Source: Octopus sinensis (Eukaryota). From it: a stretch of DNA of 64,000 nucleotides. The stretch is from the NCBI RefSeq assembly GCF_006345805.1, contig NC_043021.1, positions 25,234,001 to 25,298,000 on the forward strand, in the 5' to 3' direction. The notes beneath the pieces are model-generated. The model saw only the letters and a list, made by a program, of their open reading frames with translations, did no database searches and was not told where the DNA came from. The position numbers were made by a program, and so were the translations under genes. Positions within the stretch are counted from its first letter, which is position 1, and each line of letters starts with the position of its first letter. Shown here piece after piece: positions 2,315 through 60,799 of the stretch.

Positions 2315-3263
2315 CAGGGTGATTCAAAAGTCTCCATACATAGGAAAAATTTATTTTTTTATAAGAAACAGATTATAAGATCCCCTGATCTGACCCCTCT
2401 TGATTCTATCTTTAGGGGCATACGAAAGGCATGGTGTATCGCAGAAAGATAAAAGACACAAATCATTTGAAGGAACGCATCACCAACTCCTTTGCACACG
2501 CATCACCAGATGTGCTATTACAAGTTCACAATGAGTGGGGTCAACGTATTGCAATGTGTATTCAAAACAAGGGTCACCATATAGAGACCCTTAAATAAAA
2601 AGAAATGCTGGACATAAGAAGCATCAGATGTGGTGTGCAAGAGAGACGTTTGCGGTGGTAGGGTTATATACTGCAGATGGATGAGGAGAGATGTGTGAAG
2701 AAGTGCCACTCCCAAACAGTTGAAGGTATCAGGGGGAGAGGTAGACCCAGGAAGACATGGGATGAGGTAGTCAAGCATGACCTTTGAATGTTGGGCCTCA
2801 CAGAGGCAATGATGAAAGAGCGAGATCTCTGGAGATATGCTGTGACTGCAAAGACCCAGGCTGCTTCCTGCACCAGTTTCGCATAGCCCCAGCCCATTCA
2901 AAGTACCTTGGATTGCAGAACGACCTGCTGTGCTTGAGGAGACCAATTGAGTCAAGTACATGAACATCAAAATAAATATCAAATGGAAATTGTAGTTGTG
3001 ATACCTGTACCAGTGGCACATAAAAAGCACCCACTACACTCTCAGAGTGGTTGGCGTTAGGAAGGGCATCCAGCTGTAGAAATACTGCCAGAGCTGACTG
3101 GAGCCTAGTGCAGCTTCCTGGCTTCCCAGACCCCGGTCGAACCGTCCAACCCGTGCTAGCACGAAAAATGGACGTTAAACGATGATGATGATGATGTTCT
3201 TATAAACTGTTTCTTATAAAAAAATAAATTGCTCCTATGTATGGCGACTTTTGAATCACCCTG
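2315..3263 (+). mobile_element. Non-autonomous Tc1/mariner (IS630-Tc1-mariner) element, internally deleted, interrupted by an RTE 3' fragment
   Basis: Long TIRs (CAGGGTGATTCAAAAGT...) start at 2315 and end at 3263. TA flanks at 2313-14 and 3264-65. The internal transposase C-terminus reads RSPDLTPLD...IAMCIQNKGHHIETLK* across a frameshift. Confidence 0.8.
2601..3196 (+). mobile_element. 5'-truncated RTE LINE 3' end (PHD-RTE family, subfamily B) with (GAT)n tail, nested in the Tc1/mariner element
   Basis: Near-identical to 32200-32790. Encodes MLDIRSIRCGVQERRLRW...GRGRPRKTW and ends GGACGTTAAAC(GAT)n. Confidence 0.9.
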
Positions 3264-4675
3264 TACATATATAGACATATACATATATATGTGTATGTTG
3301 TGTGTGTGTGCGTGTGTGCCTTTGTGTCCATGTTTGTACCCCATCACTGCTTGACAACTGATGTTGGTTTATTTATGTCCCCATAACTTAACAGTTCAGC
3401 AAGAGAGACCAATGGCAGGAGTACCAGGCTTGAAAAAACATAAGTCCTGGGGTCAATTTGTTTGGCTAAAATTCCTCAAGGAGGTGCTCCAGCATGACCA
3501 CAATGTAATGAACGAAACAAGTAAAAAGATGAAAGGACACTAGTACTTTCCCCTATAGGCACAAGGCCAGCAATTGTGAGGGACAAGGAAGTCAATTACA
3601 TTGACCCCCCAGTACCCAACTGGTCCTTATTTTATTGGCCCCAAAAGGATGAACGGTAAAGCCAACCTCATCACAATTTGAACTCAAAACTTAAAGATGA
3701 AATGCTTTGCAGCACTTTCCTGGCAATGGAAGGATTCTGCATGCTCCTCATCTTTTCTAAATGTATAATTAGGGACACAAGGACGTGTGTAAATTAGCTT
3801 GTGTTATAGAGAATAATTAATTATGTAAATTAGCTTGTATCATAGAGGATAAATGATTATGTAAATAAGCATGTTTTAGAGGATAAATGATTATGTCTAA
3901 TTAACTATTCAATTCATTAAATATACTGACAGTAACCTGGCTATTGTGTCACTGCTGGTTTGAGAAGCATTAACATTTATTTCACAAACGGAGCCTGTTT
4001 GCCAAATATACCTGTGGCTGATTGAGAGTTGATAATATAGGCAAATCAGGTAACTAATGAAATATTATGTTACATATCAGCTTTGATGTGTGAAAAGCAG
4101 AGATCTGGGTCATTCGGTCAGAAAAGGTGGGCAAACATTAACCTGATTAAAATACCAGAGTCAATGGTTTTCAAACGGATGGTTAGTCAGCTGGCCTACC
4201 CGAGAATGTTCCAAGTTTTTGGCACTCTCCTTGCATCCGAATCCTTCTTCTTCCATTGCTACAGAATTGGACAAGTTTAAAAAGATGGAAGTCATTTTAA
4301 TGTTTGTTAAATAGCAATTTGTTCTCCTCCTTTCCAATCCTCCTCACTCTGCTGCAGCCTGGTCGTCCGCCTCTTCTCCCGTGAGAAACATGAGAGTGAG
4401 TGAACCTGGGGGCAGCAGAAAGGGGAAAACAAATTTTGAAGATTTTGTAGTTGTTTGAGTTATTTGGATCAAAAGTCAGGATTGAAGCACCTGCGCAGGT
4501 GTCATATAAGAGCACCTGATACACTTTGTGGAGTGGCTGGTAGTAGGAAGGGCATCCAGCCATAAAAACCATGCCAAAATCAGAAAATTGGAACCTAGGC
4601 AGCTGGCCATGCTCCAGTCAAACCGTCCAACCCATGCCAGCATTAAATGATAACCATGCTCATGATAATCATATA

Positions 4676-5842: not shown

Positions 5843-7945
5843 ATATCAGGCCCATCAGGAATTACTGCAGAGATGCTCAAAATATCTGGCAGTGTCGGCT
5901 ATAACTTAGTCACCCGTATAGTCAACCAGGTGATACACGAAGGAGTCATACCCAATGACTGGTGTAGCAGCATACTAGTCAACTGCTACAAAGGTAAAGG
6001 TGATGCCCTAGATACAAATAATTACAGAGGTATCAAGCTGTTGGATCAGGTAATGAAGGTTACGGAGAGGGTCATAGCCCAACTAATTAGAGAGAGAGTT
6101 AGTTTAGATGAGATGCAGTTTGGGTTCGTGCCAGGGAAAAGTACCACTGATGCTATATTCCTGGTAAGGCAGCTGCAGGAGAAATACCTGGCCAAAGATA
6201 AGCCCCTGTACCTGGCTTTCGTTGACATGGAGAAAGCCTTTGATAGGGTCCCCCGATCCCTTATCTGGTGGTCAATGAGGAAACTAGGGATAGATGAATG
6301 GCTGGTGAGGGTTGTGCAAGCCATGTACAGAGATGCCGTAAGAAAGGTTAGGGTTGGCAACATGTACACAGAAGAACTCAAAGTAGAGGTTGGGGTCCAC
6401 CAGGGTTCAGTACTCAGCCCCCTCCTATTTATCATAGTCCTCCAGGCAATTACGGAGGAATTCAAGACAGATTGCCCCTGGGAGCTCCTCTATGCTGACG
6501 ACCTTGCTCTAATTGCTGAGTCACTATCAGAACTGGAGGAGAAGTTCCAGGTGTGGAAGGAGGGTCTAGAATCGAGGGGCCTTAGAGTCAATCTAGCTAA
6601 AACCAAAGTCGTAATAAGTAGGAAGGTAGACAATCCACAAATGTCTTCAGGAAGATGGCCCTGCTCGATCTGTAGAAAAGGTGTAGGTAGAAACTCTATA
6701 AGATGTACCCAGTGTAAGCTATGGACACATAAGAGGTGCAGCAATGTCAAAGGTAGGCTAACTGGGAAGATAGTTTTTGTATGTGGCAGATGCTCAGGAG
6801 CATTAACCTCCGAAAATCTGCAGAAAACAACTTCCGTCACTTTCCAGGGGGAAAAACTAGAAGTAGTTGATAGCTTCCGTTATCTAGGTGATAAAGTCAG
6901 TAGTGGGGGTGGGTGCGCTGAAAGTGTAACTGCTAGAATAAGAATAGCCTGGGCAAAGTTTAGGGAGCTCTTACCTCTGCTGGTGACTAAAGGCCTCTCG
7001 CTCAGAGTAAAAGGCAGACTGTATGATGCATGTGTACGAACAGCCATGCTACATGGCAGTGAAACATGGGCCGTGACTGCTGAGGACATGTGTAAGCTTG
7101 TGAGGAATGAAGCCAGTATGCTCCGATGGATGTGTAATGTCAGTGTACATACTCGACAGAGCGTTAGTACCTTGAGAGAAATGTTGTACCTAAGAAGCAT
7201 CAGTTGTGGTGTGCAAGAGAGATGATTGCGCTGGTATGGTCATGTGGCGAGAATGGATGAAGATAGGTGTGTGAGAAAGTGCCAATCCCTAGCAGTTGAG
7301 GGAACCCGTGGAAGAGGTAGACCCAGGAAAACCTGGGATGAGGTGGTGAAGCACGACCTTCGAACCTTAGGCCTCACTGAGGAAATGACCAGCGACCGAG
7401 ACCTTTGGAAATATTCTGTATGTGAGAAGACCAGGCAGGACAAGTGAGCCCAGCCCACTTATGAATGCCTTCCTCCCTTGGACACAAAGACCTGTTGAGG
7501 CAAGCGAAGTCGATATAGAACCTCATCCGACAACAGGCACCCATGCCAACCCCCTTTGCTTGCGAAGACATGTTGGGGCAAGCGAAATCGAATTGAACCA
7601 GCCAGGATCCCTGGTCTGGTGGTACATAAAAAGCACTATCCGACTCGTGGCCGATGCCAGCGCAGCCTCGACTGGCCTCTGTGCCAGTGGCACGTAAAAT
7701 ACACCAATCCGACCGTGGCCGTTGCCAGCATCGCCTGGCACCTGTGCAGGTGGCACGTAAAAATCACCCACTACACTCACGGAGTGGTTGGCGTTAGGAA
7801 GGGCATCCAGCTGTAGAAACATTGCCAGATAAGAATGGAGCCTGGTGCAGCCTTCTGGCTTCCCAGATCCCCGGTCGAACCGTCCAACCCATGCTAGCAT
7901 GGAGAACGGACGTTAAACGATGATGATGATGATGATGATGATGAT
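5843..7945 (+). mobile_element. 5'-truncated RTE-clade LINE (PHD-RTE family, subfamily A): RT with embedded PHD finger, 3' UTR hairpin array and (GAT)n tail
   Basis: ORF 5873-7225 has RT motifs NYRGIKLL, QFGF, DMEKAFD, GVHQGSVLSP, YADD (6491-6502) and FRYLG (6875-6889). A CGA>TGA stop lies at 7223-7225 and the frame continues to 7447. The tail is GGACGTTAAAC(GAT)n. Confidence 0.95.
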
Positions 7946-8853
7946 ATAAGCTTACTCTCAGAGTGGTTGGCATGAAGAAAGACATCCAGCCATAGAAACC
8001 ATGTCAAATCAGACTGGAGTCTGGTGCAGCCCCTCAGCTTACCAGCCTTGATCAAACCGTTCATCCCATACCAGCATGGACAATGGACAATTAATGATGA
8101 TCATGATGATAAAGTACAATGATATGTTCCTATCTACCTACTTTTTGTGTCATGTAACTCAAATGAGACAGACTGACAGACAGAAAGCCAAACAAAAAAA
8201 GAAGGAAAAATAATAAGGGATGATAATGGAAAGTAGAGGAGGAAGATGATGATGATGATGTTTATTTGTTGTTTTTTAAAACAGTGGTGGCATTGGTGAT
8301 GGTCATTTCTGGCACTCGGATGCATGCATTAAATCATATTTTTAAAAATTTTATTTCAGTTCACGAAAATAAATGAACTGCTTGCCTTTAGTTCCTTACA
8401 ACTTATGAAAAACTACTACTACTACTACCACGACTACAATCACACTATTTAAGTGTGTGAAGCAGAATTATATCCCAAATTTTGAAAAGTTTCAATAAAA
8501 CTCAAATTGTCCATGTAAATGTATTTATTGTATGGTACATTGATTTCCCAAACACAACAAAATATGCTTCAACACACGAACTCACACAAAGAATCTTGAA
8601 AACCAAATCCAAAAACAATATCATCATCATCGTTTAGCATCCGCTTTCCATGCTAGCATGGGTTGGACAGTTCAACTGGGGTCTGGGAAGCCAGAAGGCT
8701 GCACCAGGCCCAGTCTGATCTGGCAATGTTTCTACGACTGGATGCCCTTCCTAATGCCAACATTTAGTGGGTGCGTTTTACGTGCCACCGGCACAGGTGC
8801 TAGACGAGGCTGGCAAACGGCCATGATCAGATGGTGCCTTTTACGTGCCAGCG

Positions 8854-8907
<54 letters not shown>

Positions 8908-16119: not shown

Positions 16120-18598
16120 TATTGTATTGGCATCCTTTCTGTCTCGGGAGACAATGGAGTTGCGCATAAAGTAGTCTAGTTCGGCTTTTATATTTCATGT
16201 CCTGATACATTTCCTGCTGTGGCTGTGTAGTCCTATCCTGGACAAACACTCCCTCTGGCAGGTACCACAAATGTAGCGAAGACTGTTCCTGGCTGGTTGT
16301 ACTGCCATAGTCTCTTGTTTACGTCTCTTCCTTTCTTTCCATTTCTCCTCTCTCTCTCTGTCACTCTTTTGTATTCCCTCTTTTACGGTACGTCGCCATT
16401 CTCCACAGTTGCCGGCAACTGCCTCCCAACCGCTAATATTGATGTTGCAGGCCTTCATGTCCCTTTTGCAAACATCCTTGTAACGTAAGATCGGTCTACC
16501 CACAGACCTAGTACCCCTAGCAAGCTCTCCGTAGAGTATGTCCTTGGGGATTCTGCCATCTTTCATACGCCTAACATGCCCAAGCCATCTCATACGTCTT
16601 TGTGTGAGGAGTGCAAACATGCTTGGTATTCCTGCTTGCCTGAGGACATCTTTGTAGGGGATATGATTCTGCCATTTGATGCGGAAGATTTTTCGGAGGC
16701 AGCGCAGGTGAAAGATGTTTAGGCGACGCTCTTGGCGTGTGTATAGCGTCCAGGTCTCGCTTCCATACAGTAGAGTGCTGAGTACACATGCCTGGTAGAT
16801 CTTCATTTTCGTGGTCTTGGTCAGCTTATTGTTGTCCCAAGCCTGTTTGGAGAGTTGGGCCATCGCAGCAGCTGCCTTGCCAATGCGTATATTGAGCTCA
16901 GCATCAAGGGATAGGTTGTAGGTGACGGTAGAGCCCAGATAGGTAAACTTCTCCACCTCTTGTAATCTGTGGTCTCCAATATGTATGTTTGGGATGTTGG
17001 TCTTCTTAAGGCTGATAGCTAAGCCAAAGTCGTTACATGCTTGCTCAAAACAGTTAATGAGCCTTTGGAGGGCTTCTTCTGTGTGTGTTACCAGAGCGGC
17101 ATCATCAGCAAATAACATCTCCTTGATCAGGACGTTTCTGATTTTGGTCTTGGCACGCAGGCGCGAGAGATTGAACAGTTTCCCGTCACTTCTACTGTGC
17201 AGAAACACTCCATCATCTGATGTCTGAAAGGCATGTGAAAGTAAGAGCGAGAAGAAGATGCCAAACAATGTAGGAGCGAGGACACAGCCTTGCTTTACCC
17301 CGTTTTTTATTTGGAAGGCGGCTGATGTTGAACTGTTGTGCTGTATGGTGCCTTGCATGTCATCATGGAAAGACTTGATGATCCTCAGCAGCTTTGGTGG
17401 ACATCCAATTTTTTGGAGCAGGATGAAGAGGCCTGTTCTGCTTACCGAGTCAAAAGCCTTTGTTAGATCAATGAAGGCCATGTATAATGGCATTTTCTGC
17501 TCTCTGGACTTCTCCTGAAGTTGGCGTATGGAGAATATCATATCGATCGTTGATCTGCTTCTTCTAAAGCCACACTGCGATTCCGGATAGATTCGAGAAG
17601 CAAGTAGTTGTAGCCTGGCCAGGATAACGCGGGCAAAGGTCTTTCCAACAGTGCTGAGAAGGGATATACCACGGTAATTGTTACAATCACCATGGTCACC
17701 TTTGTTTTTGTAAAGTGTAATGATGTTGGCATCCCGCATATCCTGAGGGACTGTACCCTCTTCCCAGCACTGACACAGAAGCTCATGAAGGTGCTGAAGC
17801 AGGATGGTGTTTTTGCCGGCTTTGATGATCTCTGAGGGGATGCCGTCTTTTCCCGGAGCCTTATTTCTTGCTAGGGAGTCCACAGCCTTGGTGAGCTCTG
17901 CTATAGATGGCGGACTGTCAAGTTCGCACATGACTGGCAAGATCTTGACACTCTCGACTGCAGCCTCAGCCACTGTGGTCTCCCGTGAGTAGAGATCCTG
18001 GTAGTGCTCCACCCATCTATCCATTTGCTTGCCTTGATCCCTGATGAGATCTCCAGTAGTTGATTTCAGAGGGGCTGACTTGGTTGCGGATGGACCGAGG
18101 GCCTTCTTCAAACCGGCATACATCTCACGGGTGTCGCCCCTGTCAGCAGCTGACTGGATACTCTGACAGATTTCCTGCCAATACCTATTTGCACAGCGTC
18201 TGGCTGTCAGTTGGGTTTTATTTCGTGCCTTTCTGAGTTCTTCGAGTGACTTTGTAGAAGAGTCACTCTTGTATTGCACCAGAGCTGCACGCTTTGTTTC
18301 GATAACTGGCTCCAGCATTGAACCAATCTGGGTTTTGCCTTTCTCTCATGCCGAAAGTATCCAATGATGTCGTATACAAGGCTTCCCTGATATAGTCCCA
18401 CCTACTTTCAGCAGAGGAGGTTGGGCAGCTACTGAGGGCAACCTTGATAGAAGCAGCAAAACATTTTCGCAGTGTAGGGTCCGAGGTTCTGGCGGTGTTG
18501 ATGCGTGGTCGGCCCACTTTCTTGGAGCAATGGACTTTTTTAGGCAGAATCCTTACCCTGCTTCTAATTAGTGAGTGGTCTGTGTCACAATCCGCGCT
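16120..18598 (-). mobile_element. RTE-clade LINE of BovB/Expander type, 5'-truncated inside the AP-endonuclease, without a PHD insertion
   Basis: 707-aa ORF 16195-18318 with NYRGISLL, ESQCGFR, DLTKAFD, GVKQGCVLAP, FADD and FTYLG, and a terminal zinc finger CGTC...H..C. Upstream SADCDTDHSLI (~18560-18598) is the APE C-terminal motif. Frameshift near 18320. The 3' UTR has CCATTGTCTCCCGAGACAGAAAGGATGCC. Confidence 0.95.
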
Positions 18599-21702: not shown

Positions 21703-22919
21703 CAGTTCAATACCAATCTGAGAAAACCTTTTGTAAGCTTTATGTGGATTGCTAATCCTTTATTAATAACATCATCACTATTTAGTGTCTGCTTTCCATG
21801 CTGGCATGGGTTGGACGGTTTGACTGGAACTGGTAAGCCAGAGGGCAGCACTAGACTCTAGCCTGATTTTGGTTTTGTTTCTATGGCTGGGTGCTCCTCC
21901 TAACGCCAACCACTCCAAGAGTGTAGTGGGTGCCTCTTATGTGTCACCGGCACTTAGCATGATTTCGGGTTGGCAGCAGGAAGAGCATCCAGCTGTAGAA
22001 AATCTTCCTCAACAAATTTCATGTGACTCATCCAAACCTACAAAAATAGATATTGCAACAATAATAACGGCAATGGTGATAACGATGATAATGATGATGA
22101 TGGTGATTAGATTGTAGATGAACCTGTAAAATCTATTTCACGAGGAGAGGAAGAGTTACATCAACGGAGATATTTATTCATTTACTCTTCCCCACTCTGA
22201 CTTTGTCTGTTTGTCCACTGCAAGGCTGTGTAGTCTTTTTTTTTAATTTTTTATTTTACTGTTTTTCTTTTTTGCAATTACTAAAGCTATTGATATCAAG
22301 ACAGCCCTCTGCGTGGCTGGTTCGGTGACTGGTTCGGTGACTGGTTGCTTTAACAATCAACTTATCAGATATACACTTTAGAACATGACACTGAAACCAG
22401 ATGAGAAATACTGCTGCTGCTGCTGCTGCTGGCGATGATGATGATGATGATGATGATGATTGCAATAATTAGAATGACTTTGATAATTGTAACAGCAATA
22501 ATTTTACTCTGGTTCCACTTTACATAACATTCCATACAAACATCACAAAAGGTTTCAATAAAAAAGCAAAATTCCCCAAAAGCAGGGACATAAGTAAACC
22601 ATTGGACAATGTCGATGGAGACAAAAGTCTGCAGGAACCGAGCCAACCCTGTTGGGTCCAAGTGACATTCTCTGAATTACAATATGAGACCTGAGTCCCC
22701 ATTTTGGGAGGTTTGTTATAGATAGGCTTAAATGGGGAAGAGGCTACCTTGGACTAGTTTTTTTTTCTGTTATAATCTTGGATTGACCAACAGAGAGCAA
22801 TTGAAACTTGCTAAACTCAAATGGGAGTCTGTGTGTGTGTATGTGAATATATATGTATGTATGCATATATGTGCATTTGTGTGCATATATATATATATAT
22901 ATTTATGTTATCTCATCCT

Positions 22920-23470
22920 CATCATCATCATCGTTTAACATCTGCTTTTCATGCTGGCATGGGTTGGACGGTTTGACTGAGGACTGGTGAGCCAGAGGCT
23001 GCACCAGGCTCAATCTGATCTGGCAGAATTTCTACAGCTGGATGCCCTTCCTAATGCCAACCACTCCAAGAGTGCACTGGGTGCTTTTATGTGCCACCGG
23101 CACGAGGGCCAGTCAGGCAGTTGTGGCAACAACCACGCTGAAAAGGTGTTTTTTACGTGCTACCTGCATGGGAGCCAGTCAGGCAGAACTGGCAACGACT
23201 ACACTTGAATGTTGTTTTTCACATGTCACTGGCACAAGTGCCAGTAAAGCGACGCTGGCAACGATCACGCTTGAATGGTGCTTTTTATCTACCACCGGCA
23301 CAGGAGCCAATCCATGGACCTGAAAACGACCATGCTCGGATGTGCTTTTAACATTCCACTGGCACGAGTGCCAATCAGGCGGAACTGTCATCAGTCACGT
23401 CAGCGATTTTGATTTGATTTCACTTGCCTCAACAGGTCTTCACAAGCAAAGTTTATTGTCCAATGAATGA
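22920..23470 (-). mobile_element. PHD-RTE family 3' UTR fragment with five diverged ~63-bp units
   Basis: Plus strand (CAT)n-CGTTTAACATC...GGATGCCCTTCC...GGGTGCTTTTATGTGCCA is followed by repeated units with GCCAG..CTGGC stems. A ~80-bp piece is repeated again at ~23505-23590. Confidence 0.8.
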
Positions 23471-26535: not shown

Positions 26536-27848
26536 GCTTGAAAGGTGCTTTTTATGTGTCACCTGCACAGGTGCCAGTTACGAGACACTAACATCATCCA
26601 CACCTGCAATTTCACTTGGCTTGATGGGTCTTCTCAAGCACAGCATATCGCCAAAAGTCTCGGTCACTAGTCATTGCCTCTGTGGGGCCCAAAGTTCAAA
26701 GATCATGCTTCACCACCTCATGCCATGTCTTCCTGGGTCTACCTCTACCACAAGCTCCCTCCACAGTTAGGGATCAGCACCTCTTTACGCAGCTGTCCTT
26801 CTCCATACACATCACATGAGCATACCAGTGCAGTCTCCTCTCTTGCACACCACATCTGATGCCTCTTATGCCTAACTTTTCTCTCAAGATACTTACACTC
26901 TGTCAAACATGCACACTGACATTGCACATCCAGTGAAACATACTAGCTTCATTTCTTTCTTGCCTATGTATGCCCTCGGCTGTCACAGCCCATGTCTCAC
27001 TGCTATGTAGCATGGCTGTTTGCACACTGACATTGCACAACCAGCAAAGCATACTAGCTTCATTTCCTTCAAGCCTACACATGTCCTCGGCTGTCACAGC
27101 CCATGTCTCACTGCTATGTAGCATGGCTGTTTGCATGCAGGCATCATACAACCTGCCTTTCACTCTGAGAGAGAGGCCTTTTGTTGCCAGCAGAGGTAGG
27201 AGCTCTCTAAACTTTGCCCAGCCTAATCTTATTCTCACAGCTATGCTCTCGGAGCATCCACCTCTGCCACTAACTTGATCACCTAGGTAACAGAAGCTAT
27301 CTACCACCTCTAGCCTACTCCCATGGCAGTTGATGGAGTCTGTTTTCTGTACACTTTCGGTGTTTATTGTACCTGTTCATCCACCGCACACAAAAGCTAT
27401 TTTCCCTGTTAACCTTCCTTTGACATTGCTGTCAGGTGCATCTTACAGAGTTACTACCTACACCTTTTCTACAGATCAAGCAGGGCCATCTACCTGAAGA
27501 GACTTGTGATTTGTCTGCCTTCCTACTTACTAAGACTTTGGCGATTCTAGACCTTGCTTCCACACCTGAAACTTCTTCTCTAGTTCTGGTAGTGATTCAG
27601 CTACGATAACAATGTCATCAACATAGAGGAGCTCCCAGAAGCAGCCTGTCTTAAGTTCCTCTGTTATTGCCTGGAGGACTGTGATGAACAAAAGGGGGCT
27701 TCGGTCCGATCCTTGGTGAACCCCTACTTGTACATTGAATTCTTCACTGTACTCATTGCCAATCCTCACCTTAGTGGTGGTGTCTCTGCACATTGTACAG
27801 CTCTCACCAGCCACTCGTCTATCCCTAGTTTCTGCATTGACCACCAGA
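26535..27848 (-). mobile_element. Older, degraded PHD-RTE copy with a 111-bp internal tandem duplication
   Basis: GVHQGSDRSP, LYVDD, a degraded WPCLIC, FCYLGD and TAMLHSSETW (twice) on the minus strand. It abuts the end of the R4-like relic. Confidence 0.85.
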
Positions 27849-31442: not shown

Positions 31443-32790
31443 ACTATTCATCATAGTCCTCCAGGCAATAACAGAGGAATTCAAAACAGGTTGCCCTTGG
31501 GAGCTCCTCTATGCTGATGACCTGGCTCTCATAGCAAAATCACTACTGGAAAGAGAAAAGAAATTTCGGGTGTGCAAGCAAGGGTTAGAATCAAAGGGCC
31601 TTAGAGTAAATGTAGCAAAGACCAAAGTTATAGTAAGCAGAAAGGCGAACTCAGCACACACACCCTCGGGCAGGTGGCCCTGCTCGATCTGTAGGAAAGG
31701 TGTAGGTAGAAACTCCTTAAGCTGTACCCAGTGTAAGCTATGGACGCATAAGAGGTGCAGCAACACCAAAGGGAAATTAACTGACAAGATAGCTTTCATG
31801 TGCGGCAGATGCACAGGGACAATAGACACCACAGATACTCAGAAAACAGATTCCATCACACTCCAGTGGGAGAAACTAATAATAGTTGATAGTTTCCGCT
31901 ACCTGGGTGACCAAGTTAGTAGTGGAGGTGGATGCTCAGAGAGTGTCACCACTAGAATACGAATAGCCTGGGCAAAGTTTAGAAAGCTCCTACCCCTACT
32001 GGCGACAAAGGGTCTCTCGCTCAGAGTGAAAGGTAGATTGTATGATGCATGTGTGCGAACTGCCATGCTTCACGGTAGTGAAACATGGGCTGTGAATGCA
32101 GAGGACATGCGTAGACTTGAAAGAAATGAAGCTAACATGATCCGCTGGATGTGTAATGTCAGTGTGCGCACACGACAGAGTGTAAGCACCCTGAGAAAAA
32201 TGCTGGACATAAGAAGCATCAGATGTGGTGTGCAAGAGCGACGTTTGCACTGGTACGGTCATGTACTGCAGATGGATGAGGAGAGATGTGTGAAGAAGTG
32301 CCGCTCCCAAACAGTTGAAGGTATCAGAGGGAGAGGTAGACCCAGGAAGACATGAGATGAGGTAGTCAAGCTTGACCTTTGAACATTGGGCCTCACAGAG
32401 GCAATGACGAAAGACCGAGATCTCTGGAGATATGCTGTGACTGCAAAGACCCAGGCTGCTTCCTACACCAGTTTCGCATAGCCCCTGCCCATTCAAAGTA
32501 CCTTTGATTGCAGAACGACCTGCTGTGCTTGAGGAGACCAATTGAGTCAAGTACATCAACATCAAAATAAATATCAAATGGAAATTGTAGTTACGATACC
32601 TGTACCAGTAGCATATAAAAAGCACCCACTACACTCTCGGAGTGGTTGGCATTAAGAAGGGCATCCAGCTGTAGAAACACTGCCAGATCAGAATGGAGCC
32701 TAGTGCAGCCTTCTGGCTTCCCAGACCCCGGTCGAACCGTCCAACCCGTGCTAGCATGAAAAACGGACGTTAAACGATGATGATGATGAT
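31443..32790 (+). mobile_element. 5'-truncated PHD-RTE LINE (subfamily B)
   Basis: YADD at ~31510, intact PHD ligands at 31681-31812, FRYLG, TAMLHGSETW and GRGRPRKT. (GAT)n tail at ~32775-32790. Confidence 0.92.
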
Positions 32791-32967
32791 TATATATATA
32801 TATTTGTATGTATGTATATATACATATATATATGTCTACATATATATATTAATCAGCCAAAATTGCGAGGATGATCCGGTTCTTGACTGAAGATTGAAGG
32901 CTTCGAATGTCCCATCCGTGTTTTTTGTATCGTCTTCTAAAATGTTTTGCGTTCTTGTCCCAGTTTG

Positions 32968-37290: not shown

Positions 37291-37576
37291 ATATATATAT
37301 ATGTATATATTATATATATATGTATATATTATATATATATATATGTATATATTTGTATATATATATATTTGTATACATATGTATATATTTTTATATATAT
37401 ATGTATATATATGTGTGTGTGTGTATGTATATTTATATACACACACACATGTATATTATCATCAGCATCATCATCATTTGATGTCCGTTTTGCATGCAAG
37501 CTGGGATTGGATAGTTTGACAGGAACTGGCCAGCCAGGAGACTGCACCAGGCTCTCCTGTCTGCTTTGTCTGTGCA

Positions 37577-39075: not shown

Positions 39076-39752
39076 AGAATCAGAATCAAAATCAAAATCG
39101 AAATCGATCAGCATCAATGGAAATTGTAGCTGTGATACCAGCGCCGGTGGCATGTAAGAGAACCATCCAAACGTGGACATTGCCAGCACCGCCCCGACTG
39201 GCCTCCGTGCCAGTGGGATGTAAAAAGCACCATCCGATTGTGGCCGTAAAAAGCACCCACTACACTCACGGAGTGGTTGGCGTTAGGAAGGGCATCCAGC
39301 TGTAGAAACATTGCTAGATCAGACTGGGCCTGGTGCAGCCTTCTGGCTTCCCAGACCCCAGTTGAACCGTCCAACCCATGCTAACATGGAAAGCAGACGC
39401 TAAACGATGATGATGATGATGATGATGATGATTATTCATCATGCTGGGCTGCTGAAATCTACAAGTTTTTTTCTCTCTCTCTGCTTATTTTCTTCTATTC
39501 CTTTCTGTTGAAGGCTCCAAACATGAAAGACGTGTTCATTTTTCCTGAGCGTCAAACAAATACACTTACCTGTAGTTCATACACCTGTCTTTGTCTTTTG
39601 CTTTTCCATAAATTTCAGATATATATATATATATATATTGTTGTATTTCGGAATGGTCATTTTGCCAGTTTAGCCAATAAAAACACACACACTATATATT
39701 TGGTGTTATTTTGCTTCACCGTTATTTATTTTTTACATTAATCTTAATCTTA

Positions 39753-39970: not shown

Positions 39971-41578
39971 ATCATCATCATCGTTTAACGTCCGCTTTCC
40001 ATGCTAGCATGGGTTGGCCGGTTCAACTGGGGTCTGGCAAGCCCGAAGGCTACACCAGGCCCAGTCTGATCTGGCAGTGTTTCTACAGCTGGATGCCCTT
40101 CCTAACGCCAACCACTCCGAGAGTGTAGTGGGTGATTTTATGTGTCACCGACACAGGTGCCAGACGAGGCTGGCAGACGGCCACGCTCGGATGGTGTTTT
40201 TTATGTGCCACCGACACAGGTGCCAGACGAGGCTGGCAGACGGCCACGCTCGGATGGTGTTTTTTATGTGCCACTGACACAGGTGCCAGACGAGGCTGGC
40301 AGATGGCCACCCTCGGATATGGTGTTTTTGGTGTTTTTCTTATGTGCCACTGACACAGGTGCCAGACGAGGCTGGCGAACGGCTATGATCGGATGGTGTT
40401 TGTTACGTGCCTACGGCACAGAGGCCAGTCGATGCGGTACTGGCTACGGTCCCGTTCGGATGGTTTTCTTATGTGCCACCGGCACTGGTACCACAAGGAT
40501 ACAAATTCCATTGATGTTCATCTATTTTGATTTGGTTTGACTTAATTCGATTTGACTTTGATTTGATTTGCCTCAACAGGTCTTCACAAGTGTCACAAGC
40601 AGGAAGGTATGCACAGGTGGACTGACTACGTCCCAGGTAGGGGCCATGGGTTATGGCTTCACTAGTCTTGCCGGGTCTTCTCGCGCACAGCATACTTCCA
40701 TAGGTCTCGGTCTCTAGTCATTTCCATGGTGAGACCTAACTTTCGAAGGTCGTGCTTCACCACCTTGTTCCAGGTTTTCCTGGGTCTACCTCTTCCACGG
40801 GTTCCCTCAACTGCTAGGGATTGGCACTTTCTCACACACCTATCTTCATCCATTCTTGCCACATGACCATACCAGCGCAATCGTCTCTCTTGCACGCAGC
40901 AACTGATGCTTCTTAGGTACAACATTTCTCTCAGGGAACTAACGCTCTGTCGAGTAAGTACACTGACATTACACATCCATCGGAGCATACTGGCTTCATT
41001 CCTCATGAGCTTACGCATGTCCTCAGCAGTCACGGCCCATGTTTCACTGCCATGTAGCATGGCAGTTCGAACACATGCATCATACAGTCTGCCCTTTACT
41101 CTGAGCGAGAGGCCTTTAGTCACCAGCAGAGGTAAGAGCTCCCTAAACTTTGCCCAGGCTATTCTTATTCTAGCAGTTACACTCTCAGCGCACACCACCC
41201 ACTACTGACTTTATCACCTAGATAACGGAAGCTATCAACTACTTCTAATTTTTCCCCCTGGAAAGTGACGGAAGTTGTTTTCTGCAGATTTTCGGAGGTT
41301 AATGCTCCTGAGCATCTGCCACATACAAAAAACTATCTTCCCAGTTAGCCTACCTTTGACATTGCTGCACCTCTTATGTGTCCATAGCTTACACTGGGTA
41401 CATCTTATAGAGTTTCTACCTACACCTTTTCTACAGATCGAGCAGGGCCATCTTCCTGAGGACATTTGTGGATTGCCTACCTTTCTACTTATTAGTACTT
41501 TGGTTTTAGCTAGGTTGACTCTAAGGCCCCTCGATTCTAAACCCTCCTTCCACACCTGGAACTTCTCCTCCAGTTCTG
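39971..41578 (-). mobile_element. 5'-truncated PHD-RTE LINE (subfamily A) with an expanded 63-bp 3' UTR array
   Basis: The coding part is highly similar to 6530-7440. PHD at 41312-41444 with a 1-nt frameshift. Array at ~40140-40490. (ATC)4 tail at 39971-39982. Confidence 0.93.
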
Positions 41579-43566: not shown

Positions 43567-43601
<35 letters not shown>

Positions 43602-43951
43602 TCATCATCATCATCGTTCAACGTCCGCTTTCCATGCTAGCATGGGTTGGACGATTTTGTCTGAGGGATGGCAAACCAGATGGCTGCACCAGGCTCCAAT
43701 CTTGATTTGGCAGAGTTTCCACAGCTGGATGCCCTTACTAACACCAACCACTCCGAGAGTGTAGTGGGTGCTTTTTACATGCCACCAACACGGGGGCCAG
43801 TCAGGCGGTACTGGCAACGCCCTCGCTCGAATATTTTTACACATGCCGCCAGCACAGGTGCCAGTAAGGCGACTTTGGTAACGATCACACTCGAATGGTG
43901 CCTTTTATGTGCCACTGGCACGGAAGCCAGTTGGCTGCTCTGGCAACGATC

Positions 43952-45990: not shown

Positions 45991-46555
45991 CATGTCTGTA
46001 CTCTAGGCGTAACAGCCAGGAACTGATGTAGCCTACTGTGTATTTGGTGCTTTTTATGTGACATCAGCCCCTATTCTATTTACATGACACCAGATAGTTA
46101 TAGACCCACTCTGCTGACCAATACATCAATGCCTTTTTTTTTACAGACTAATGGATCCTTAAATGACTATACATACATGCACACATACATACTATGTATA
46201 TATATATATATATATATCTCACGGAGTGGTTGGCGTTAGGAAGGGCATCCAGCTGTAGAAACACTGCCAGATAAGACTGGAGCCTGGTGCAGCCTTCTGG
46301 CTTCCCAGATCCTCGGTCGAACCGTCCAACCCATGCTAGCATGGAGAATGGACGTTAAACGATGATGATGATGATGATGATGATATATATATATATATAT
46401 ATGCATATGTATATATAGTTGGAATTTATAAAAAAACGAAAGATGAAGACAGGTGTGTAAACAACATGTATGTATGTATGTATGCATGCTCACACAACAT
46501 ATATATATATATATAATATATATATATATATGTGTGTGTGTGGTGTGTGTGTGTG

Positions 46556-59270: not shown

Positions 59271-60799
59271 TTGAGAAATTGCTTAAGATAAACTTGAATT
59301 TAAATATTCTTCTGCTTGTTTCAGTCATTTGACTGTGGCCATGCTGGAGCTCTGCCTTTAAAGGGTTTTTAATCAAAGAAATCGAATCCAGGACTTCCTC
59401 TTTGTAAGCCTAGTACTTATACTATCGGTCTCTTTATTAGAACTGCTAAGTTACAGGGATGTAAACGCACCAACAAACACACACACACAATGTATATATA
59501 TATATACAACAAGTTTCTTTCAGTCTACCAAATCCACTCACAAAGCTTTGGTTGGCCTGAGGCTATAGAAGAAAACATTTGCCCAAAGTGCCATGCAGTG
59601 GGACTGAACCTAGGACCATGTGGTTGGGAAGAAAGCTTCTTGTGTATGTGTATCATTGATTATTTAATGTCCCTTTTCCTATGATAGCATGGGTTGGACA
59701 GTTTGACAGCAACTGATGAACCAAAGAGCTGTGCTGAGCCAAAAGGTTCTTCTTTGGTATGGTTTCTACAACTGGAAGCCCTTCCTAATGCCAACCATTT
59801 TGCAGAGTGTGCTGGGTTCCTTTTTTTATATGAGACCAGTTGCAGTGAAGTCACCAAGTAACATGCAGGACAGGACCCCCTCAACTGAGTGGGGAATAGT
59901 TGTGAGGGAGGTGGCTTTGTGCCAGGTGTGGAGAAGTTAGGGTATGAATAGAGGGACAGAAGTAGGGGTCTTGCAGTAGATGAGTTATATGGCTATATCA
60001 GTTGGAAAAGAGGAGAGGAGGGAGAGAAGATGGTGAAAATAAAATGTATGAGGGTGCACCCTCAAGTTACAAGCGTGGGGTGGGGGTATATCTGAAGAGG
60101 TGCGGAGGATTGGATAGGGTGAGTTAGTAATAAGAATCTTCCTAGTATGGACAACAAGAGGAAATCACTGGACTTTTATAAAAGCTGTGGTCCCAAATTC
60201 CAAAAATGTTATTGAGTAGGACTGGCTCCAAATGAAGCCCTGTGAGTAGAACTGCAGAACTCTTGTGACCATTAGAACGAAGATGGGGAGGAGGACACTG
60301 GTCTATCGTCGTCATCATTGTTTTAACTGTTTCATACTTGCAAGGGTCAGACGGAATTTACTGAGGCAGATTTTCTATGGCTGGATGCCCTTCCTGCTGC
60401 CAACACTTTGCCTATTTCCATGCAAGCTAATATTTCTTCGTAAACAGACATGTTTTGATGGAAGATTTGAAATGAAGGACACTGCTTGTATTATTGTGAC
60501 ATTTGTTTACAACTGTTATGTGATGTCAAGACATCACATGACAATAACACCCACACATGTATGTATACATATACACACACACATACACGATGCACTTATT
60601 TCAGCTTCCATCTGCCAGATCCACTCACAGGGTTTTGTTTGGCCCGAGGCTGTAGTAAAAGATGCTTGCCCAAAGTGTTGTGCAGTAGGACTGAACCTGA
60701 AACCATGTTGTTAGGAAGCAAAATTATTATTATGATAATTAGTAATCTCATAAATTCAGACAAAACATAACAGTCATCTGTAAATTGGTTTGGGATGAG

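Follow-up and report, generated by a model that had tools for sequence, protein, structure and literature searches.

A PHD-type zinc finger between motifs 6 and 7 of the reverse transcriptase in an RTE-type LINE from octopus and other animals

The 64,000-nucleotide stretch of Octopus sinensis DNA analysed in this work (contig NC_043021.1, positions 25,234,001 to 25,298,000 of the forward strand; referred to below as the window) is AT-rich eukaryotic DNA with many microsatellites. It contains copies of a long interspersed nuclear element (LINE) of the RTE type, the reverse transcriptase (RT) of which is interrupted by an additional small domain. We are very confident that this domain is a conserved PHD-type finger situated at the position known as RT6a in R2 elements. 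As to its function, we tentatively favour a role in binding nucleic acid at the target site. An earlier note on the same DNA had drawn attention to the element as an abundant RTE family carrying a complete PHD finger inside its RT and had proposed that the finger reads chromatin. Copy 1 of the element is organised as follows:

5846 to 7945, plus strand: copy 1 of the PHD-bearing RTE-type LINE, 5'-truncated, extending from RT motif 0 (GPSGITAEMLK) to the (GAT)n tail
5873 to 7447, plus strand: remnant of open reading frame (ORF) 2 with RT, PHD insert and the C-terminal RLRWYGHV...GRGRPRKTW region; match to RVT_1 with E=1.8e-32
6491 to 6502, plus strand: RT motif 5 (YADD) with the catalytic aspartates, D209 being invariant and D210 at least 90% conserved in an alignment of 117 sequences
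6590 to 6610, plus strand: RT motif 6 (NLAKTKV), K243 invariant
6620 to 6661, plus strand: linker on the N-terminal side of the insert, of variable sequence, with a predicted local distance difference test score (pLDDT) of 66 at residues 251-260
6662 to 6793, plus strand: predicted PHD-type C4HC3 zinc finger core from C1 to C8, assigned by Pfam, PDB profile search, Foldseek and ligand invariance
6794 to 6847, plus strand: C-terminal linker of the insert, of low conservation, pLDDT 61 at residues 311-320
6875 to 6892, plus strand: RT motif 7 (FRYLGD), Y337 and G339 invariant
7448 to 7918, plus strand: 3' untranslated region (UTR) with internal repeats at 7619-7768; its 178-nt 3' end is common to many short copies
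7919 to 7945, plus strand: (GAT)9, the terminal trinucleotide-repeat tail, found in the same type on copies 2, 3 and 5 and on L002, a near-complete copy from another assembly

The ORF of copy 1 contains one in-frame stop codon (7223-7225), and its closest named relatives are proteins from Octopus bimaculoides (84% identity) and O. vulgaris (82%). Its RT stretch reads ...YADD...NLAKTKVVISRKVDNPQMSSGRWPCSICRKGVGRNSIRCTQCKLWTHKRCSNVKGRLTGKIVFVCGRCSGALTSENLQKTTSVTFQGEKLEVVDSFRYLG, and the part between YADD...NLAKTKV and FRYLG that holds the C4HC3 motif is WPCSICRKGVGRNSIRCTQCKLWTHKRCSNVKGRLTGKIVFVCGRC. Rereading of the ORF gave the spacing C-x2-C-x10-C-x2-C-x4-H-x2-C-x14-C-x2-C at 6662-6793, which is exactly the one claimed in the earlier note, and the location of the finger inside the RT, between motif 6 (NLAKTKV) and motif 7 (FRYLG), was confirmed as well. 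When a relaxed C4HC3 pattern was applied to all six frames of the window, it matched at 6662-6793 and 31681-31812 only, while 0 matches were obtained in 100 shuffles of the window.

Profile comparisons place the segment among the PHD fingers. As an isolated stretch of 76 residues it scored 26.6 bits with the Pfam PHD model (PF00628; cut-off 24), and the same segment scored 21.3 bits, which is under the cut-off, inside a 450-residue ORF. Ten relatives scanned with PF00628 reached 23.2-30.9 bits, and only P0060 (23.2) and P0223 (23.3) stayed below the cut-off. A profile of the insert matched 58 PDB sequences (E<=0.01), and almost all of these are named as PHD fingers or PHD-containing proteins; Pygopus 1/2 ranked first (E=1.5e-7), followed by PHF23, PHF2, PHF13, KDM5B, BPTF and TAF3. 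A profile of the whole protein also recovered the same PHD fingers, independently of its RT matches. An AlphaFold2 model was built on the 117-sequence alignment (mean pLDDT 83.6). Its RT body resembles the structures of R2 and LINE-1 ORF2p, and the finger is predicted with a pLDDT of 81-90, with two short strands (275-277 and 284-286) and, following the His, a helix (287-290), whereas the linkers on either side have values of 61-66. With the domain-only model as query, PHD fingers made up nearly all of the top 50 Foldseek matches (BPTF 2f6j, Pygo 2vpg, MLL3, TAF3, ING1 among them). The better ones superimpose with a root-mean-square deviation (rmsd) of 2.2-3.0 Å, and their weak E-values, of about 0.02, are to be expected for so small a domain (about 50 residues). 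The classification as PHD finger proposed in the earlier note is thus upheld by the Pfam score of the isolated segment, by the profile matches in the PDB and by the prediction of the expected strands and helical turn. We regard the segment as a true zinc finger of the PHD cross-brace type, ~45 residues long and suspended on two variable linkers of ~12-15 residues each, which are modelled with low confidence; the finger and its linkers together amount to an insert of about 65 residues.

Copies of the family within the 64-kb window were defined by tblastn and blastn. Besides copy 1, the following coding fragments and a PHD-less RTE suitable as a control are present:

31444 to 32793, plus strand: copy 2, a diverged subfamily, with an intact PHD core at 31681-31812
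39971 to 41578, minus strand: copy 3, 95% identical to copy 1 at the nucleotide level, with the PHD codons at 41312-41444
26612 to 27848, minus strand: copy 4, decayed, with an internal duplication and a 26-nt deletion that takes out C4, W, H and C5 of the finger
2601 to 3196, plus strand: copy 5, a 3' fragment consisting of the C-terminal coding part and the tail
16195 to 18345, minus strand: PHD-less RTE (control), ending in a C-terminal C2HC finger of its own (16207-16275)

The family is as abundant as had been supposed: the 64 kb contain five fragments with coding sequence, and its 178-nt 3' end is matched 15 times. Every copy in the window is dead. Copy 2 is 77% identical to copy 1 over 337 amino acids, and the alignment confirms the claim that all eight ligands are kept in this diverged subfamily while the flanks have changed. 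The corresponding claim for 41312-41444 in copy 3 is accurate as well, since the eight ligand codons are present. It is to be added that they lie on the minus strand and that a T run (~41330) has gained 1 nt, which puts the last CxxC out of frame. The duplication in copy 4 concerns ~130 nt of thumb-region coding sequence, the segment TAMLHSSETWAVTAE... occurring twice.

The PHD-less RTE extends from FADD (17101-17112) to FTYLG (16933-16947) in 55 residues counted from start to start (51 between), without an insert, and it serves well as the internal control for which it had been proposed. The RT of the PHD-bearing LINE and that of the RTE-2_OV-like copy in the window share 28% identity. Just before its stop codon, the PHD-less RTE encodes YICGTCQRECLSRIGLHSHSRKC, a zinc finger of the type C-x2-C-x12-H-x3-C (C2HC; 16207-16275), which is apparently identical with the 'C2H2' finger that has been described from octopus RTE-2_OV as a rarity among RTEs (PMC9115989). 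Given the PHD insert in one element and the C-terminal C2HC in the other, a single genome harbours two RTE lineages with different accessory zinc fingers, and the C2HC of the second lineage is a suggestive parallel case.

The finger is widespread and conserved. From a search of 5.8 billion proteins, 8,000 candidates were scored, among which at least 2,845 homologues were found at E<=1e-10; most of those listed carry precomputed RVT_1 and PHD annotations. The taxonomic spread rests on a handful of named matches, the hosts being Hydractinia (a cnidarian), Mercenaria (a bivalve), Branchiostoma floridae and B. belcheri (cephalochordates) and two octopuses. A complete C4HC3 motif is present in 116 of the 120 best homologues and begins in nearly all of them 57-58 residues past YADD. 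Across the 117 aligned sequences, which are ~50% identical to the query, the zinc ligands are invariant (8/8), like the catalytic residues, and P263, V266, G270, V271, G272, N274, I276, W284 and L296 are conserved to at least 90%. An exhaustive HMMER pass with the insert profile over 1.84 billion cluster representatives (50% identity) returned 4,917 matching clusters at E<=1e-3, of which 1,125 also reached E<=1e-10. Short fragments of 70-400 amino acids prevail among the best 150 clusters, and RVT_1 was also detected in five of eight that were scanned with Pfam. Similar proteins had been suspected to lie unremarked in databases, and indeed there are thousands, provided with automatic RVT_1 and PHD annotation.

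Selection on the insert was estimated as the ratio of non-synonymous to synonymous substitutions (dN/dS) after Nei and Gojobori, for window copies 1 and 2 only and with small site counts. Overall the ratio was 0.14. It was lowest in the flanking RT (0.09-0.10), reached 0.18 in the finger (44 codons) and was 0.38 when the insert was taken as a whole. The difference between core (0.18) and whole insert (0.38) indicates that the core is constrained and the linkers are not, and together with the invariance of the eight ligands in 117 sequences it speaks for the purifying selection on which the earlier note had made its proposal depend. The insert is a fixed and selectively maintained feature of a large clade of elements in a cnidarian, molluscs and cephalochordates, and not an octopus oddity.

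A near-complete copy of the host element (L002) is contained in an unrelated ENA assembly (ERZ25069870). It consists of one frame of ~1,000 amino acids with one stop, in which an apurinic/apyrimidinic endonuclease (APE; Exo_endo_phos, 297 amino acids), a linker, the RT with the PHD finger and the C-terminal region follow one another. No ORF1 was seen in the L002 locus, where the other upstream gene calls are below 70 amino acids. Another homologue, P0093, starts within the C-terminus of the APE, and L001 (P0050), considered as a full-length copy, proved to be 5'-truncated. No Cys/His motif of the CCHC type follows the RT, and the ORF ends ~70 amino acids past RLRWYGHV. The sequence ...GGACGTTAAAC(GAT)n forms the end of four window copies (1, 2, 3 and 5), and in L002 (GAT)n comes immediately after the stop codon. 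The C-terminal RxRWxGHV motif (RLRWYGHV...GRGRPRKTW) is common to the PHD-bearing LINE and the other RTE of the window. Owing to the single APE-RT frame, the (GAT)n tail, the lack of a CCHC motif and the shared C-terminal motif, the element is assigned to the RTE type. Judged by its sequence, it is a compact single-ORF APE-RT LINE that is RTE-type by architecture, tail and C-terminal motif, a designation that embraces RTE and RTEX alike. The attribution to an RTE family in the earlier note agrees with these hallmarks of the RTE group.

The position of the finger within the RT provides a lead to its function. The family profile aligns to R2Bm through residue 670, directly before the 6a loop (672-677), and the insertion point presumably corresponds to this RT6a loop. 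In R2Bm, 6a is located between motifs 6 and 7 and reads upstream target DNA via His673 and Lys675, together with ZnF and Myb; deletion of residues 672-677 blocks nicking (PMC10499050). In structures of vertebrate R2 the same loop wedges into the distorted target DNA (PMC11601368; also PMC11204384 and PMC13188248). By analogy, the finger of the RTE-type LINE would sit where the upstream target DNA, or its chromatin, passes the RT, and it is this match with the 6a loop of R2 that suggests a target-site module.

We rank the possible functions as follows: nucleic-acid binding comes first, reading of the histone H3 tail second, binding of a protein or lipid partner third and a structural role last. 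The first of these is favoured with considerable reserve. The finger would be an accessory nucleic-acid-binding zinc finger that engages the target site, in other words an enlarged and tethered 6a module that keeps the RT in place during target-primed reverse transcription. The most likely direct ligand would be nucleic acid, namely target DNA, possibly also the RNA template or the primer. Binding could be brought about by the conserved Lys/Arg positions of the finger (261, 268/269, 287/288, 293, 295, 303 and 306), and its exposed Trp and Tyr would be available for stacking. Between C1 and C8 the net charge within the family, as counted from the sequences, is +2 to +11 with a median of +6; window copy 1 has +11 and is devoid of Asp and Glu, as compared with a net charge of about -6 for the Pygo1 finger. 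A finger so basic would be expected to prefer DNA or RNA over the likewise basic H3 tail. The PHD finger of VIN3, which is also positively charged, fails to bind H3 but interacts weakly with both DNA and RNA (PMC9640981).

Several points weigh against nucleic-acid binding. The interaction of VIN3 with DNA is only millimolar (PMC9640981). Most characterised PHD fingers with the Trp found here bind the histone H3 tail, and six hydrophobic histone-contact positions of Pygo are conserved in the LINE finger (PMC2726290). The analogy with R2 crosses clades: R2 possesses a restriction-like endonuclease and N-terminal DNA-binding domains, while the LINE studied here uses an APE, so that the path of the target DNA may differ.

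Some of these points are at the same time the basis of the next reading, according to which the finger recognises the N-terminal tail of H3, probably methylated at K4, on the nucleosome beside the nick, so that integration would be biased to a certain chromatin state. We consider this unlikely on balance, but it is the alternative that fares best. The closest matches in sequence and fold are readers of H3K4me2/3 (Pygo, PHF23, PHF2, PHF13, TAF3, BPTF, ING), and since 6a of R2 faces upstream target DNA, a nucleosome tail is possibly within reach (PMC10499050). The contacts were mapped by HMMER alignment to Pygo1, whose residues have been experimentally shown to bind H3K4me2 (PMC2726290). Y341 of Pygo1 corresponds to position 262 (Y, F or W in 103 of the 117 sequences), V350 to V271 (108/117), A356 to S/A275 (115/117), I357 to I276 (115/117), W366 to W284 (116/117) and L382 to L296 (112/117). 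Equivalents of the methyl-lysine cage (Y341, V350, A356 and W366 in Pygo) are thus all kept, including both aromatic walls. On the other hand, D352 at the lip of the Pygo cage is lost in a 2-residue deletion, the equivalent of E360, which is essential in Pygo, is acidic in only four of 117 sequences, the loops with Y379 and A388/V389 are absent, and Lys or Arg predominate at the 'front' positions 268/269. Moreover, the net charge of +2 to +11 is at odds with the typically negative surface of histone-binding PHD fingers (PMC9640981), and the window copy would need to bind a +4 peptide without a single acidic residue. Of the chromatin reading put forward in the earlier note, the hydrophobic cage has stood up to the comparison; the acidic pocket residues are lost and the finger is basic, in contrast to canonical H3 readers and much like the PHD of VIN3, and histone reading is a hypothetical function of the finger.

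A more far-reaching version of the same idea, and in our estimation a slightly more doubtful one, holds that an APE-LINE clade extending from cnidarians to cephalochordates carries a methyl-lysine-type histone reader within its RT and that this reader gates target-primed reverse transcription according to the chromatin state of the adjacent nucleosome. If true, a histone reader would be embedded in a polymerase and the element would be epigenetically targeted, the first chromatin-guided LINE of this type.

It is improbable, though worth considering, that the finger is a docking site for a host factor (through a free N-terminus or a methyl-lysine), for a different region of the ORF protein, for instance the APE, or for an acidic phospholipid. 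The hydrophobic groove and the loop G-V-G-x-N-S-I, which is peculiar to the family, are both conserved and hint at a specific ligand, not necessarily a histone; other PHD fingers have partners of this kind (the rear face of Pygo binds BCL9 (PMC2726290) and PHF2 binds a VRK1 peptide (7m10)), and the element lacks an ORF1 partner protein. However, no result points to a candidate partner, and the positive charge and the 6a position are explained more simply by nucleic acid. Even lower is the probability that we assign to a purely structural zinc module that stabilises the palm-thumb region and has no ligand. While the zinc ligands are the most conserved positions and the finger is predicted with good confidence in the full-length model, the two linkers that carry it are modelled with low confidence and evolve fast (dN/dS 0.18 in the core, 0.38 over the entire insert), the conserved solvent-type residues W284, aromatic 262, K287, K/R288 and R306 go far beyond what the fold needs, and related RTs do well without a finger. 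Finally, a chance pattern of Cys and His, or the capture of a host exon by a single dead copy, could be entertained only on account of the uniformly defective window copies and is practically eliminated by the shuffles without a match, by the same position of the motif in 116 of 120 best homologues from cnidarian, bivalve, amphioxus and octopus, by the purifying selection on the finger and by the invariance of its ligands.

The 3' end of the LINE has a distribution of its own. Its last ~178 nt, ending in ...GGACGTTAAAC(GAT)n, occur 15 times in 64 kb, mostly without the coding part:

3003-3196, 4487-4643, 7954-8110, 8620-8858, 21770-21953 and 22913-23197: 3'-end matches, first part
37455-37554, 39240-39432, 43598-43915, 46218-46384 and 59663-59817: 3'-end matches, second part

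The short copies sharing this tail are either SINE-like elements (short interspersed nuclear elements) that use the tail of the LINE or extremely 5'-truncated LINE copies; ARAGORN did not detect a tRNA-like head on them. The 3' UTR contains a repeat unit of ~70-85 nt, ...GGCACGTAAAA.CACC.TCCGA...GCC.GC..., the number of which varies among copies, with ~2 units in copy 1 (7619-7768) and 4-5 in copy 3 (40193-40480, minus strand). L002 has essentially no 3' UTR (6900-7100), as opposed to ~470 nt in the octopus copies.

Candidates for a relative of the finger outside an RT context were rejected. P0256, which combines ORC3_N with an array of PHD fingers, owes its score to the sum of eight generic PHDs and is unrelated; P0268, in which BRWD_AD is combined with a PHD of the LINE type, has the appearance of a chimeric gene model, and P0121 is an internally duplicated LINE fragment. 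Fusions with host domains occur in gene models, a BRWD/PHIP ancillary domain being joined to a LINE-type finger in P0268 and PF07766 being present in P0059 from O. bimaculoides; both are probably exonised or mis-joined LINE fragments, with domestication as a less probable alternative. P0004, labelled 'MAG: Herbaspirillum sp.', is 74% identical to the RT-PHD part of the octopus LINE and almost certainly represents animal (cephalopod-like) contamination in a bacterial metagenome bin. Some homologues (P0016, P0025, P0058 and others) carry a precomputed match to Pfam PF27108.

In a full-text literature search, the scope of which excluded Repbase notes and the paper defining RTEX, no description of a PHD finger inside an RT was found; where 'PHD' did occur, it was in papers on ORF1 or in statements on funding. 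Within LINEs, PHD fingers have been described from ORF1 of the CR1/L2/Jockey superfamily, and the structure of ORF2 is regarded as highly constrained (Metcalfe & Casane 2014, PMC4120745). As for 6a itself, R2 has been reported to be the only non-LTR element whose RT possesses it (PMC10499050, Wilkinson et al. 2023). We rate the architecture described here, an RTE-type LINE with a domain-sized insertion at RT6a, as apparently new, its sequences being already abundant in databases. A whole zinc-finger domain has been maintained at 6a under selection in four animal groups, even though ORF2 of LINEs is usually called constrained and accessory domains are usually placed in ORF1 or at the termini. 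Its presence would mark 6a as a recurrent hot spot for target-site engagement and offers a handle on the question how APE-type LINEs without ORF1 or CCHC motif hold their target DNA or chromatin. It also bears on the retargeting of LINE and R2 enzymes for gene insertion, as a folded domain is tolerated at 6a.

Recruitment of PHD fingers by non-LTR retrotransposons is in itself not without parallel. Kapitonov and Jurka are said to have reported such fingers in 2003 in ORF1 of LINEs of the CR1/L2/Jockey type. The likeness ends with the recruitment: in these elements the PHD is located in ORF1 or 5' of the endonuclease, whereas the finger of the RTE-type LINE lies inside the catalytic domain of the RT, and an ORF1 is missing. 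Reader domains on enzymes of transposition are also known from RAG2, with its PHD finger, and from the chromodomain integrases of chromoviruses, where they are terminal or on separate subunits and histone binding has been demonstrated. The idea of a histone reader in the LINE goes back to this analogy; the LINE finger differs in being internal to a polymerase.

With LINEs of the RTE clade (RTE-1, BovB, RTE-2_OV), the element shares APE and RT in one ORF of ~1,000 amino acids, 5'-truncated copies, a 3' end that consists of a short tandem repeat instead of poly(A) and is common to many short copies, and the C-terminal RxRWxGHV...GRP motif seen in the other RTE of the window. It is unlike the RTE-2_OV-like element, in which FADD and FTYLG are 51 residues apart and a C2HC stands at the end, by virtue of its insert of ~65 residues (PMC9115989).

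Among the PHD fingers themselves, that of Pygopus (2vpe, 2vpg, 4up0) is closest (E=1.5e-7, rmsd 2.4 Å), sharing Y-P-C-G-[VI]-C, [AS]-I-x-C and W-x-H as well as the conserved hydrophobic residues of the K4me cage and the T3 pocket. The LINE finger departs from it by the absence of the acidic EVND loop and of E360, by two shorter loops and by its charge (~+6 versus ~-6). The PHD of VIN3 and other VEL proteins resembles the LINE finger in combining the PHD fold with positive charge, the positive surface of VIN3 being conserved (PMC9640981). VIN3, however, lacks an aromatic cage and its PHD is part of a three-part superdomain, while the LINE finger is single and tethered and has kept the cage. The closest counterpart in position is RT6a of R2, which likewise lies between RT motifs 6 and 7. 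What is a short basic loop (DGHRKK) in R2 is replaced in the RTE-type LINE, an element of the APE type, by a complete zinc-finger domain.

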